A DNA stretch of 64,000 nucleotides from positions 24,668,126 to 24,732,125 of the forward strand of contig OZ037766.1 of assembly GCA_964035545.1 (NCBI GenBank), read 5' to 3'. This document shows, one piece after another, positions 1,071-63,999 of this stretch; the stretch's first letter is position 1; each line of letters opens with the position of its first letter. The position numbers and the translations under genes were made by a program. The notes beneath the pieces were generated by a model, which ran no database searches, was not told the DNA's origin, and worked only from the letters and a program-made list of their open reading frames with translations. The DNA comes from Bugula neritina (Eukaryota > Animalia > Bryozoa).

Positions 1071-4000
1071 ATGACGAGCTTTGCATATTTGCTTTCTCAG
1101 GTAAGTGTAATGTAACTTTGTAGACAATAAGAAGCTGTTCTGATTAAAATAGGCATCTTTATACAAAATGTGATAACAAAATTTCATTAAATCAAAAATC
1201 AACAAACATTTTTTAACTCATATTTTAAATTCACATTGTGCACCTGAAACTTTTTCAGACTTTAGACGACACAGAACATTAATTAACTACGTGTTTGTCA
1301 GCTTTTAAACTATTTCTAGTTATATATGTATCTTTATTATTATCTACATGCATGATGATTATATAATAAATAATATAGTTGATGTTGGTGGTAACATATA
1401 ATGTAAAACTATATATATAGTGTAAACAAATAATTTATCCTACAAAGTATAGCACAAAAGAATAGGGATGAAAAGCTATGTAGAAATGTTAGAAGTATGA
1501 GTGTGAATTAAATACACAGGCGATTGGTCCGGGGGAAATACTCTGTTAAAAGTTTTAAAGGCTGTTTTGAAAACCATATTCTGCTGGTTAGTTAATCTGA
1601 GATGTGCATGATATCTAAATATAGCCTCTAGATTGACTTTCATCAAATGCTTAATCATTTTTCTGGCTACCATTATTTGCTTTCTATTTCAGACGATTTT
1701 GATCTTAACCTGCTTAGCAGTTCAGAGTGCCTCATCAACCAATGCTGTCTATGACAGGTGAATATATACTTATACTACGCCTATGAAAAATAAAAGTGTT
1801 TTTTAAACACAAAAGCATATAGTAATGTAGCCCATTATAGCTTTTATCTTTTGAGTTTATGCTTGCTTTTGGGAAAATGAACAGAATATTATTCTTCAAA
1901 TATGATTAAACCTAAAAATAACTTAAACTTAAATGAAAATATAATAACGCTGGATAATTTGACCAAAACACATCTCAGACGGTAGCATAAATATTATAAT
2001 AAATTGGGTCAAAATAAGCCGTAAATAATACTTTTAATAAAATGCTGCATAATTATCTAGAAATTATAAACTGTATAAAATCTGAGCTGTTGCATGCTTA
2101 TAACCGTAGTATAAACTAAGATGTTGGAACTTTTTTGATTGCATAAAAACATTTTGAAAAAGTTCAAAACTGTCTACTTGAAATGCGTTATAGCAACCTG
2201 TATTCTCACTAGCAAGCTATATTGCACTTACCAGCTACTGGGAACATTTTTAAAAATATAATGCAAAAGTGATGCTTAAAAATATTATTACTTATATTTG
2301 TTATTTTAACTCCGCGTTGAGTTTTGAGCTTAAGTAGTAACAAAGAAGCTTACATTTTTGTAGACTAAACAACTACGAGAAAGCTGAGGTGTACAGTACA
2401 TCCACAAGGTATGTTTTCCACATGGAAGAAGATGAGTACATACCTGGGAACATACTCTTCTCAGATCTGCATTCCCTGAGGACAACAAACGGTATCGCTG
2501 TTTCTACCGTAGCTGGATCACCAACAATATCTCATGGCTATTTTACCGGTCCAGGAACAAGTGCACTTTTCTACTCTCTATATGGATTTTACCAGAAAAA
2601 CAGAACTCATGTTATAGTGGTAGATTATATGAATGCATGTCTGAGAATGATTGACAGAACCAATGGACATAATTCACAGTTTGCTGGAACCTGCCAATCA
2701 GCTGGACATAGAAATGGGCACGTTGGTTATGCAAAGTTAGATAAGCCAAATGAGATATTGCTAGATAAAACCAATCAAAACACTCTTATTGTTTCTCAAC
2801 GTCCACAATATTCCTCATCATATTCCTATCTTAGATCAGTTGACATCAACACTGGTTATGCTGGACTTTTAGTGTCATCTGGTTTAAATCATCCTAAGGG
2901 TATGATGTGGGATGAGAATGAAGACATACTTTATGTGACAAATGATCATTACATTGCTAAAATAACATGGAGCACCAAAGCTGTTCAAAAGCTAGTAGGT
3001 TCAACATCTTCTGGTAACATTGTTGGAACTTTTAGCCAGTCACTACTCAGCACCCCTAAAAACCTTTTATTTTTAACTCCAGAACTAATGATAGTCATCG
3101 AATGGGGTGAGACTAAATTAAAAACAATCAACATAGCATCTCAAATTTCTATGAATGTAGACATCTTTGGCTTTGATTCTGCTATCTATTCTGTTGCTCA
3201 GTTTAATGGCAGCATTTATGTTGGAACTAATGGAAAGATCTACAAACTAAGTGGTGAGTTTACCAATCCAATAACTATTAAAGAACCTTTCATTTTATAG
3301 TCAGCATTCGGATCAATATTCGTTCTTTGTTAATCACAGTCGTATATGGTGTATCTTCTGTATATTAAATAATAATGACCACAGCTACTTTCTATGTAAT
3401 CAGCAAGATCTACTGCTATAGGGAATACTAAGCTCCTATTCTAACGAACACCAAAACAAGTTTGTTTTTTTTTGTTTCCATGCAACACGATTTAATTTGA
3501 GACAGCTATTAATCTACCCCAGTTTCTTTTGAATTGCATAATACTGAATTTTTCTATTTTAGAAACGCATATTCAATGCTCTGTAAGAGCCCCTTCCCTG
3601 CCAAGTGAAACTGAAGTAAAATTTGATTTGTACACACAAAACTGCACAAACTATCTTGTAGAGACTTTTGGTAAGTTATGCACTTATATCATTCTATGCT
3701 ACTACTTTTGTGTGAATGGCTTTTTGTTTGCCTTGAAATCAAGTAAAGTTATATATACATATATATATATACATATATATATATATATATATATATATAT
3801 ATATATATATATATATATATATATATATATATATATATATATATATATATATATATATATATATATATATATAAAGCGGCTTCCATAGCAGATCAAAAGT
3901 TAGTTAAATTTATTTTTACTTTCTTCAATCTAGACAGTTTTGACATTATGTTTTAATCAAGATAACTAACTTTTGCATAGGCCATGTAGTCGCTTTTTTA

Positions 4001-5790
4001 ATTGCAAAATTTTGAAAAACTTTAACACAACCTTGAGTGAGCAGGTTGTCTACATTTAATTGATCAATCACTCTATAATATTCTTTATTTTCCGTATAGC
4101 TCTTGCATAGAGCTCTAAGACAAAACTAATTAGTAATCAAGTCACCAGTTAAGAACTCAAAACAAACGGTAGCTAGTTTTCACTGTGCTTTGAGCTTTTT
4201 CTGGATTAGGTAACAATCAATAGCTCTGTTTTGTAGAGAGTCCTGTAGAGAGAAGAGTTGCTCTAAAAGCAGAGTACTCTGTATTCTGTGACCAGCTAAT
4301 CCTTCAGGGAATGTTTGGGAAAGCTTTATTAGAACCTGTTCTTAAACTCAAAATGACTGAACTGCAAGATGTCTGTGGAAATGGTAATGAATATTCCCTC
4401 TTAAGCTCCTATAATAAGTCTCTAGCAAAATCTATAGATATTATAGTTGACCAGTAGAACATTCGATAGCCAGAAAAATTTTAGATGTATAGAAGAATTA
4501 ATAAATAAATATATAATGGTTTCCATTGAAAAGACTCTGCTTGAAAATGCATTTCTTTTTATCTGCACAGGTTGTAACATGGCTGTTAACATGGCTCCCA
4601 GCTACTCCTGTTCTAATAATACACTGGAAGTAAGATGGCCGACAGACATTGTGTACACTGGGGATGTCAAAGAAATACTAACTAAGACAAGAGATATGCT
4701 GACTAAAGCTGCCGAAAATGCTGGGAGAGAGAAAGCTCAGATCTTAACTCTTAATAGAGATCCTGAGTAAGTGGCAGTTGTATTCCCATGAGCTTTGAGC
4801 TATTTGCTAGGCAAATAAACAAGTGAATCATTTCAACGAAGGAATATGTTTTGAACATTTATCATTTACAGCTGAGTTTGTCTAAATTTATCACTACGGT
4901 CCTATTACTTGTTTCCATTGCTTCGCATTAATTGAATGGATTTTTCACTAAATCTTTGGCAACAGTTGGATCAAATGAAACCGCAATCTTAAGTTACTTA
5001 CAAACTACAATAATCCATATGAGTTCATCCAAAGCAATGGCAACACATATGGTGCATACGATTCAAATTGAATATTCATGCATTAGCTTACAGCTATTAT
5101 ATATGTACAAATTTATTTAAATGAAATTTACTTATAAGAGTGTTTTAGAAACAATAGAATTGCTGAAGATGCTTCATTAGGTTATCAGTTTGAGACTCTT
5201 TATCTTGGCTTCAACATAATATATGCTTGAAACTTTATGATAAGGCGCATAACTTATTTGTAACTAATAATATGTTAGTATTATTATAACTCTAGTAAAT
5301 GAAATAATATTTGCCTTCTTTTGCACCTACACACACATGGAAAGCTGCAAAAAATTCCTAAGTTGGAAAGGTGTATAATAGCATCTTGTGAAATCCTACA
5401 TTACATGTTTTTATTGTCGTGTTTTGTCCACTTTAAATCTTCATGATTACCAAAGTATGTATTTGAATTCTGTAGTCATGCATCTTGAAACAATATTACA
5501 ACTTTTATAACTTGATGGTATAAACTTAATACTGTTATATATACAACAAAAAGCTAATTGCACTAACACAATCTAAAAGACTAAAATATTAACATTCATT
5601 CTTGGGCAATGTTATGGCTATCGTTGAACAAAGTTGAAAGATTTTATTATATCTCAGTTGTTTTACTATGTTTTGTAGTTTCTTATTACCTCGTATTCAA
5701 TCAAATGGACAGAGTATTCAAGTTGTGTTAGACACTAAATGTACTGAAGATGGGAAAGTTTACCAGGAAAGCACAGACACCTGTGTCTAA
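1071..5790 (+). CDS. Secreted NHL-repeat beta-propeller protein, paralog 1 (7 exons: 1071-1100, 1693-1757, 2364-3253, 3563-3670, 4237-4383, 4571-4766, 5679-5790; 515 aa)
   Basis: All introns GT-AG with compatible phases (0,2,1,1,1,2); spliced length 1548 nt ends in TAA. N-terminus [23 protein letters not shown] is signal-peptide-like. Exon 3 has NHL-like blades ([51 protein letters not shown]). Same exon structure recurs in four paralogs. Confidence 0.88.
3751..3872. repeat. (TA)n microsatellite in intron 4 of paralog 1
   Basis: Read directly. Confidence 0.95.
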
Positions 5791-63300: not shown

Positions 63301-63999
63301 AACTTAAATAACACTGAATTTTTTAATTTATTTTTGCTATGCATGCTTCCTTATTATTACTATATCATACATTTTCACCCGAGATTGTCGACAAAACATT
63401 TTTTATTATCAATACTCAATTGTGATTAAACTTCAAAACTTTATACATGTTTATATTCTAGATATGGATATACAGTGCTCTGTAAATGCTTCCTACCTGA
63501 CAGGTGAAACTGAAGTGACATTTGGTTTGGGCACTCAGGTTTGCACAACCTACCTGGTCAAGATTATTAGTAAGTTACAAAAGATGCAGTTTTTCTGTTT
63601 CACAATATTAATTCCGAGTTAATGATTACATTTATGTTGTTCACTCTAAAAGCAAAAAAAATGTATATATATACGTTGGAAAATGGCTCAGTTTTCTTCG
63701 CAATCTGCTACTAGTGCGTGTTAATTAAAGTCTAAAGCGCAAACACTAAGTCACATCAAGTGCATGCTAAACTGTGAATTTCAATTTCAATTATTTGAGC
63801 TTAAATCAAATTTTTGCCACCAATTGTTACTACCTGTAATCCCGTTTTGTAGAGAGTACTGTAGAGAGAAGAGTTTCTCTAAAGGCAGAGTACTCTGTAT
63901 CCTGTGACCAGCTAATCCTTCAGGGAATGTTTGGGAAAGCTTTATTAGAACCTGTCCTTAAACTTAAGATGACTGAGCTTCAAGATGTTTGTGTAAATG
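60328..63999 (+). pseudogene. Paralog 5, frameshifted in exon 3 and cut by the window edge (exons 60328-60330 [tentative], 60926-60996, 62118-63006, 63462-63569, 63853-63999)
   Basis: Homologous exons with intact splice sites. (AT)4 at 62813-62820 has one extra AT, giving TAA at 62824-62826; removing 2 nt restores KDISLISRDLMII in frame with ORF 62841-63059. Could be a null allele or a consensus error. Confidence 0.72.

Follow-up and report, generated by a model that had tools for sequence, protein, structure and literature searches.

A tandem family of secreted NHL-type propeller proteins with a variable, putatively ligand-binding top face in the bryozoan Bugula neritina

We analysed a stretch of 64,000 nucleotides from Bugula neritina (assembly GCA_964035545.1, contig OZ037766.1, positions 24,668,126 to 24,732,125 of the forward strand), hereafter called the window. 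It carries five tandem paralogues, all on the + strand and spanning positions 1071-63999, as had been proposed by a preliminary model reading of the DNA letters (the sequence-only reading). These genes make up 5 of the 11 members of a cluster, and they belong to what appears to be a lineage-expanded family of secreted proteins of cheilostome bryozoans, for which a binding function is proposed by analogy with other NHL proteins. The five genes have a seven-exon plan in common. Exons 1 and 2 encode a signal peptide, exon 3 (884-890 nt, phase 2/phase 1) the whole six-bladed propeller, exon 4 a 36-residue linker with two Cys, and exons 5-7 a 150-residue tail. Comparable exon-3 boundaries were found in the 30 family loci that were inspected.

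Gene 1 (1071..5790) is intact and encodes 515 amino acids. Its exons, bounded by GT/AG sites, lie at 1071-1100 and 1693-1757 (signal peptide), 2364-3253 (propeller, complete with six NHL-type blades, phase 2/phase 1), 3563-3670 (two-Cys linker) and 4237-4383, 4571-4766 and 5679-5790. The last three exons (4237..5790) encode a SEA-like, ferredoxin-type domain followed by a short two-Cys tail, and are under purifying selection. Gene 2 (14372..18970) is also intact, with exons at 14372-14401, 15293-15357, 15993-16876, 17212-17319, 17731-17877, 18045-18240 and 18859-18970. Gene 3 (29748..38597), intact and with a hAT element inside its intron 2, has exons at 29748-29777, 31642-31712, 35593-36476, 36850-36957, 37281-37427, 37600-37795 and 38486-38597. 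For gene 4 (43277..49338), a candidate exon 1 at 43277-43306, which encodes the same peptide as in the sibling locus described below, is followed by exons at 44324-44391, 45211-46094, 46404-46511, 47958-48104, 48276-48471 and 49227-49338. Gene 5 (60926..63999) has exons at 60926-60996, 62118-63006, 63462-63569 and 63853-63999, exons 6 and 7 falling just beyond the window end; its exon 1 was searched for and not located. In this assembly its exon 3 is frameshifted at the start of blade 5 by two extra bases in an (AT)n run (~62813..62820), which may be a real lesion or an assembly slip; the sibling orthologue (P0012) is in frame.

By eye, the loop motifs quoted for these genes by the sequence-only reading agree with the translations, except that the last ones of gene 5 lie in another frame; gene 4 reads MPGNILF. 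Its description of the scaffold as near constant proved too strong, exon 3 being just 70% identical on average. Divergence is unevenly spread along the genes. Exon 5 DNA is 93% identical among the five, and divergence is greatest in exon 4 (57%). Genes 1 and 2 have upstream DNA in common (112-1359 and 13452-14660) and near-identical exons 1 and 2, with 100% identity in the exon 1 region. Despite these near-identical exons, their exons 3 reach only 74% protein identity. From the likeness of exons 1-2 and of exon 5 set against the divergence of exon 3, the pattern suggests a gene conversion that leaves the propeller exon untouched.

Among named proteins, B. neritina EB796_008124, EB796_008125 and EB796_008239 come closest. 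Their loci, together with JGI metagenome contigs, are 86-90% identical to the window, introns included. Since the name Bugula neritina covers at least three cryptic species (PMC11480708), we read their source, from this level of divergence, as a probable sibling cryptic species. Orthologues of gene 2 (L033/L034), gene 3 (L031, which is EB796_008125) and gene 4 (L038, which is EB796_008124) were recognised there. An annotated 502-residue sibling protein, P0016, agrees with the gene 1 model and has the same organisation as the window genes; it was used for database searches in place of the joined spliced model. No hydrophobic or transmembrane segment follows its signal peptide (maximum Kyte-Doolittle hydropathy over 19 residues, KD19, 0.9), and the family proteins are thus predicted to be soluble and secreted, without a membrane anchor.

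An AlphaFold2 model of P0016 residues 22-315 comprises six four-stranded blades with a predicted local distance difference test score (pLDDT) of about 95, and secondary structure assignment by DSSP shows closure of the ring by an N-terminal strand. The closest structures are NHLRC2 (E 6e-13) and SOQ1, then Pizza6, TRIM71 and PknD, and the best sequence match is the NHL domain of NHLRC2/SOQ1 (E 7e-9). The secreted, NHL-type six-bladed fold announced by the sequence-only reading is therefore upheld by signal peptide, model and structure matches. Against the Pfam NHL family (PF01436), the best score is 19.9 bits (gene 2), for a curated cut-off of 20, and the other genes score lower. No thioredoxin-like domain lies before the propeller, the signal peptide alone preceding exon 3, and the gene model contains no RING, B-box or coiled coil of the TRIM-NHL ligases, having a signal peptide instead. 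No tectonin-type Pfam repeat was matched at E<=1.

The tail, modelled alone, reached a pLDDT of 66. In a structure search over 48,161 chains, four SEA-containing chains ranked first, with Z scores of 6.8, 6.6, 6.2 and 6.0; Foldseek returned weak ferredoxin folds only. The tail is thus probably a SEA-like domain, the match being middling but consistent. It has no Pfam SEA match and no PDB sequence match, sequence searches with it found no relatives beyond the family, and the GSVVV-type autocleavage motif was absent from the beta2-beta3 loop on inspection. SEA proteins such as MUC16, TMPRSS6 and dystroglycan have the ferredoxin-like fold in common with this tail but differ from it in sequence (7-13% identity) and by their cleavage motif, mucin stalk and membrane anchor.

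To locate variation on the propeller, residues were assigned to face classes by blade topology from the DSSP analysis of the P0016 model, independently of their variation. The top face was defined as the inter-blade and b-c loops, following the convention of bioRxiv 10.1101/2021.03.16.435614. Among the five window genes, amino-acid diversity is 0.48 on the top face, compared with 0.29 in bottom loops, 0.27 in D-A linkers and 0.23 in strands. This excess has a permutation p<5e-5 and is reached by 2 of 293 circular shifts. The six members of the cluster that lie beyond the window agree with it (0.37 on top against 0.18-0.22 elsewhere, p=1.5e-4), as do the sibling-lineage paralogues (0.53 against 0.20-0.23). 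The concentration of variation on one face, the central claim of the sequence-only reading, is thus confirmed and replicated outside the window. The excess on the modelled top face is real but about two-fold, not antibody-like, the frame itself being some 25% variable. That reading overlooked the positions before strand A of blade 1, including residue 37, which is among the strongest selected sites described below.

Within the cluster, we selected a set of 42 symmetric exposed positions on the top face. Tyr, Phe, Trp and His make up 28% of residues at exposed positions against 8% in other loops. Across 23 family members, Asn212 is the only near-invariant residue of the 42, other near-invariant columns being structural Gly, Pro and Cys or bottom residues, and no conserved catalytic or metal-binding set of His, Asp, Glu or Arg was found on the top face of these members. 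The six-bladed fold is also that of propeller enzymes such as peptidyl-hydroxyglycine lyases, SMP-30/strictosidine synthase-like enzymes or lactonases, which could have varied substrates; lacking such a residue set, an enzymatic role is scarcely credible here.

Selection was analysed with GY94 codon site models in our own implementation (not PAML), using naive posteriors rather than Bayes empirical Bayes. On the 13 intact genes, the likelihood-ratio test (LRT) statistic was 26 for M1a/M2a and 23 for M8a/M8, with 3-4% of codons at a nonsynonymous to synonymous rate ratio (omega) of 3-3.5. When the 8 intact genes of this genome were taken, the values were 36 and 35, with 6-8% of codons in the class. 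The top face holds 9 of the 11 flagged codons (Fisher p 8.5e-5), the other two (200 and 254) lying in inner strand A. The contrast of exon 3 with the later exons, which had been advised as a check, gave an LRT of ~20-22 for exon 3 and 0-1 for exons 4-7 in the same seven genes.

Sites 200 and 254 are probably pore-lining, as expected if the proteins were scavengers whose variable central pocket took up small molecules or toxins, such as metabolites from the diet, the fouling community or the symbiont. We consider this highly improbable, given that variation covers the whole face and all six blades, suggesting large ligands.

Several results weigh against strong diversification of the cluster. 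The 42 exposed positions, picked after inspecting the cluster, have an omega of 1.04 (LRT 0.2), which is not above 1, compared with 0.25-0.35 elsewhere under a shared synonymous rate (dS). Freely fitted double and triple hits lower the site test to an LRT of 6.9 (p ~0.009). Synonymous divergence is raised in top codons, many of which are multi-hit, and the pairwise homoplasy index (PHI) hints at recombination (p 0.013), so that exchange between paralogues may contribute. The orthologue pairs of genes 2, 4 and 5, three of the five, show a top-face nonsynonymous divergence (pN) of 0.02-0.06, below the intron divergence of 0.09; the faces of these genes are conserved between lineages, not raced. 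The sequence-only reading had made its claim depend on a nonsynonymous to synonymous ratio (dN/dS) not below 1 at these loops. Only the site models bring it past that value, and only just, the means of whole top loops on their own dS being 0.42-0.50; such per-class ratios with separate dS are misleading because multi-hit codons inflate dS. At four-fold sites in otherwise unchanged codons, the values were 0.33 on top and 0.33 on the bottom.

The first three of these observations would all fit an alternative in which relaxed constraint, or shuffling by gene conversion, is all that affects the top face of the cluster, the class with omega above 1 being a model artefact. Other results make this distinctly unlikely. 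With segment-specific trees the site test keeps an LRT of 15, and with a doublet rate calibrated on introns it stays at 12-15. Moreover, fitting the doublet rate gave ~0 for bottom loops and, for the top, a value severalfold that estimated from introns, which argues against a uniform mutational effect. When the lineages are compared, dN on the top face is 0.10, the same as intron divergence (0.10) and double the non-top dN (0.05), a signal driven by genes 1 and 3. Thus, diversifying selection holds for a subset of top-face codons; it is weaker than the sequence-only reading had claimed, and the cluster is under moderate, episodic diversifying selection.

An independent test was provided by two distant subfamilies uninvolved in the choice of the 42 positions, which were carried over by alignment; similarity to gene 1, and not variability, had guided the choice of these loci. 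In the C7 subfamily, diversity was 0.64 at the 42 positions against 0.13-0.16, and in the subfamily at C2:33 Mb it was 0.57 against 0.17-0.28. The M1a/M2a LRT reached 117 for C7 (class omega 5.1) and 72 for C2:33 Mb (class omega 1.8-3.6), remaining at 61 and 26, respectively, with free multi-hit rates. Among the 26 sites flagged in C7, 20 fall within the 42-position set. These sister subfamilies lie far above an omega of 1 at the same positions, which again speaks against relaxation or conversion, and this replication is the strongest evidence for selection to vary the top face of the family.

Three sequencing runs were judged to be RNA, with contigs that cluster on exons and join exons 1-2, 2-3 and 3-4. 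These contigs, matched at 80% likeness, represent several paralogues of a related lineage. The family is therefore transcribed and spliced, and lack of expression, named beforehand as a reason to give up the recognition hypothesis, does not apply to the family; the level of any single gene is not given by these contigs.

Bugula neritina is a colonial, spermcasting animal, and a secreted protein with a variable face might serve as an allorecognition (colony fusion) or gamete recognition factor. In the sibling lineage, proteins of the same locus from two data sets are 99.7% identical, with a single difference over ~295 residues that lies away from the top face, and exon 3 is identical in two metagenome samples, a comparison of few pairs from samples that possibly came from related colonies. 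Alleles thus look nearly invariant, and the variation lies between paralogues. As the proteins also have no membrane anchor, we judge this role very unlikely, and the allo-recognition suggested by the sequence-only reading is disfavoured.

In the genome, exon 3 has 132 matches, 30 of which were analysed with 1.5-kb flanks. The cluster at C2:24.67-24.85 Mb consists of the 11 matches with 64-100% identity; the remaining ones, at 20-38% identity, lie mostly in arrays on C2, C7 and C8. SEA exons adjoin family members on C2, C5, C7 and C9, and none were seen on C3 or C8, so not every match need be a secreted two-domain protein. Altogether, Bugula neritina would have some hundred secreted propellers with six blades, forming a family that had not been described. 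On C3 (G000:C3:23.58-23.71 Mb), propeller matches occur in pairs ~1.4 kb apart, which suggests members with two propellers.

Decay is frequent, 3 of the 11 close copies being frameshifted. In L007 and L010, exon 3 is interrupted by insertions of 4 nt. The usual acceptor is gone from L008, where an in-frame one 10 nt upstream may take its place, and the sibling orthologue of gene 1 (L036/L037) contains an in-frame stop. Downstream of gene 5 (G000:C2:24738854-24740060), an extra set of exons 6 and 7, with exon 6 apparently duplicated and no close exon 3 match, is a probable gene remnant.

Outside this genome, P0015 (JGI assembly, 28% identity) is a full-length homologue that has the signal peptide, the propeller and the tail and lacks the exon-4 linker, and environmental assemblies contain many homologues of ~300 residues. 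A metagenome search for related loci found nothing. In two distant homologues, P0138 and P0140, a transmembrane-like segment follows the propeller, which indicates that receptor forms of the propeller head exist in other organisms.

Several mobile or repeated elements lie between and within the window genes. The hAT element of gene 3 intron 2 (32654-34714) encodes a SPIN/GTF2IRD2-like transposase in a 525-residue open reading frame, with a tRNA-like Rfam match inside (33106-33178). Gene 2 intron 1 contains a short insert between TA runs (14769-14909, core ~14817-14846) that gene 1 lacks and whose sense strand carries a hammerhead-like CUGAUGA...GAAA core; it has no Rfam match and its folding energy is not unusual. 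A TA-flanked element of ~175 nt is present in two copies on opposite strands (25638-25812 and 43722-43896, 91% identical) and has a hammerhead-like core with a G/C stem II; L037 and L038, loci of the sibling lineage, contain related pieces. Upstream of gene 5 exon 2 lies a decayed long terminal repeat retrotransposon (54881-58984), with terminal repeats ~95% identical and reverse transcriptase/RNase H fragments on the - strand. An element resembling miniature inverted-repeat transposable elements, with perfect 62-nt inverted ends, occupies 53250-53945. Repeated element fragments at 7292-8330 and 26915-29075, including a 197-residue open reading frame at 7730-8323 on the - strand with no Pfam match, are presumably of Penelope/GIY-YIG type.

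The family can be set beside several known systems. NHLRC2/SOQ1 and teneurin-type NHL domains are likewise six-bladed propellers with long Gly-rich D-A linkers; relative to NHLRC2/SOQ1, the Bugula family has no thioredoxin or HAD domains, is only ~20% identical, and is secreted and multicopy, with a top face that is variable, not conserved. Tachylectin-1 and -2, tectonins and fish-egg lectin are secreted propellers of 5-6 blades that bind microbial surface glycans (PMC3269628). The Bugula proteins are also secreted multi-bladed propellers but belong to another repeat family, and their blades all differ, evolve fast and are followed by a SEA-like tail. The lectins have repeated conserved sugar sites. 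Diversified germline recognition families with a variable binding surface include FREPs, SRCR proteins and Hydractinia Alr. For bivalve C1qDC proteins, tandem expansion, birth and death, and a variable binding surface on a conserved frame are described (PMC6835236). These four systems resemble the Bugula family in expansion, birth and death, and a conserved frame with a variable, putative binding surface, and differ from it in that the Bugula scaffold (NHL with SEA) is new, its function is proposed from likeness, and little allelic polymorphism was seen. A literature search, outside which most subscription papers lay, found no paper that connects NHL propellers with bryozoans or with a secreted protein of NHL-SEA type, and a biomineralisation proteomics paper did not mention NHL. 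The strategy, in which a germline family expands and its binding surface comes under selection, is known from other invertebrates, and the scaffold and the phylum are new.

NHL domains bind their partners via top-face loops (bioRxiv 10.1101/2021.03.16.435614), and by this analogy the top face of the Bugula propellers would bind ligands. Each gene would produce a soluble protein of ~510 residues, with an NHL-type propeller as binding head and a conserved SEA-like tail as a common handle for multimerisation, matrix docking or effectors. Tandem duplication would multiply the genes, failed copies would decay, and selection would alter the exposed, aromatic-rich residues of top face and pore, with frame and tail conserved, so that paralogues probably differ in ligand specificity. 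The partners could be matrix, cuticle or adhesion components of the animal itself, the propellers acting as paralogue-specific binding codes among its own proteins. In teneurins, adhesion specificity is set by the NHL domain (PMC5851990). SEA domains are characteristic of proteins of the matrix and the cell surface, and the conserved faces of genes 2, 4 and 5 between sibling lineages would agree with such self recognition. However, self partners alone would hardly produce the omega values of 4-12 found for a tenth of the codons of young subfamilies, together with frequent gene death, and we regard this as unlikely. The likeliest ligands would be foreign surfaces such as those of microbes, parasites or the symbiont, recognised by a germline pattern-recognition or agglutinin repertoire, and we would put the chances of this at about even. 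More tentatively, and with considerable doubt, much of bryozoan non-self recognition might be built on the NHL propeller, a secreted NHL-SEA humoral arm standing beside membrane-bound and cytosolic TRIM arms with the same variable face, and possibly discriminating the bryostatin-producing symbiont.

The immune and recognition molecules of bryozoans are almost wholly unexplored, and the family offers concrete candidate proteins and residues. The NHL fold, known for conserved RNA, protein and enzyme functions, appears here to be used as a variable binding scaffold, and the family would constitute a natural library of a small, stable, putative binding domain encoded by one exon.

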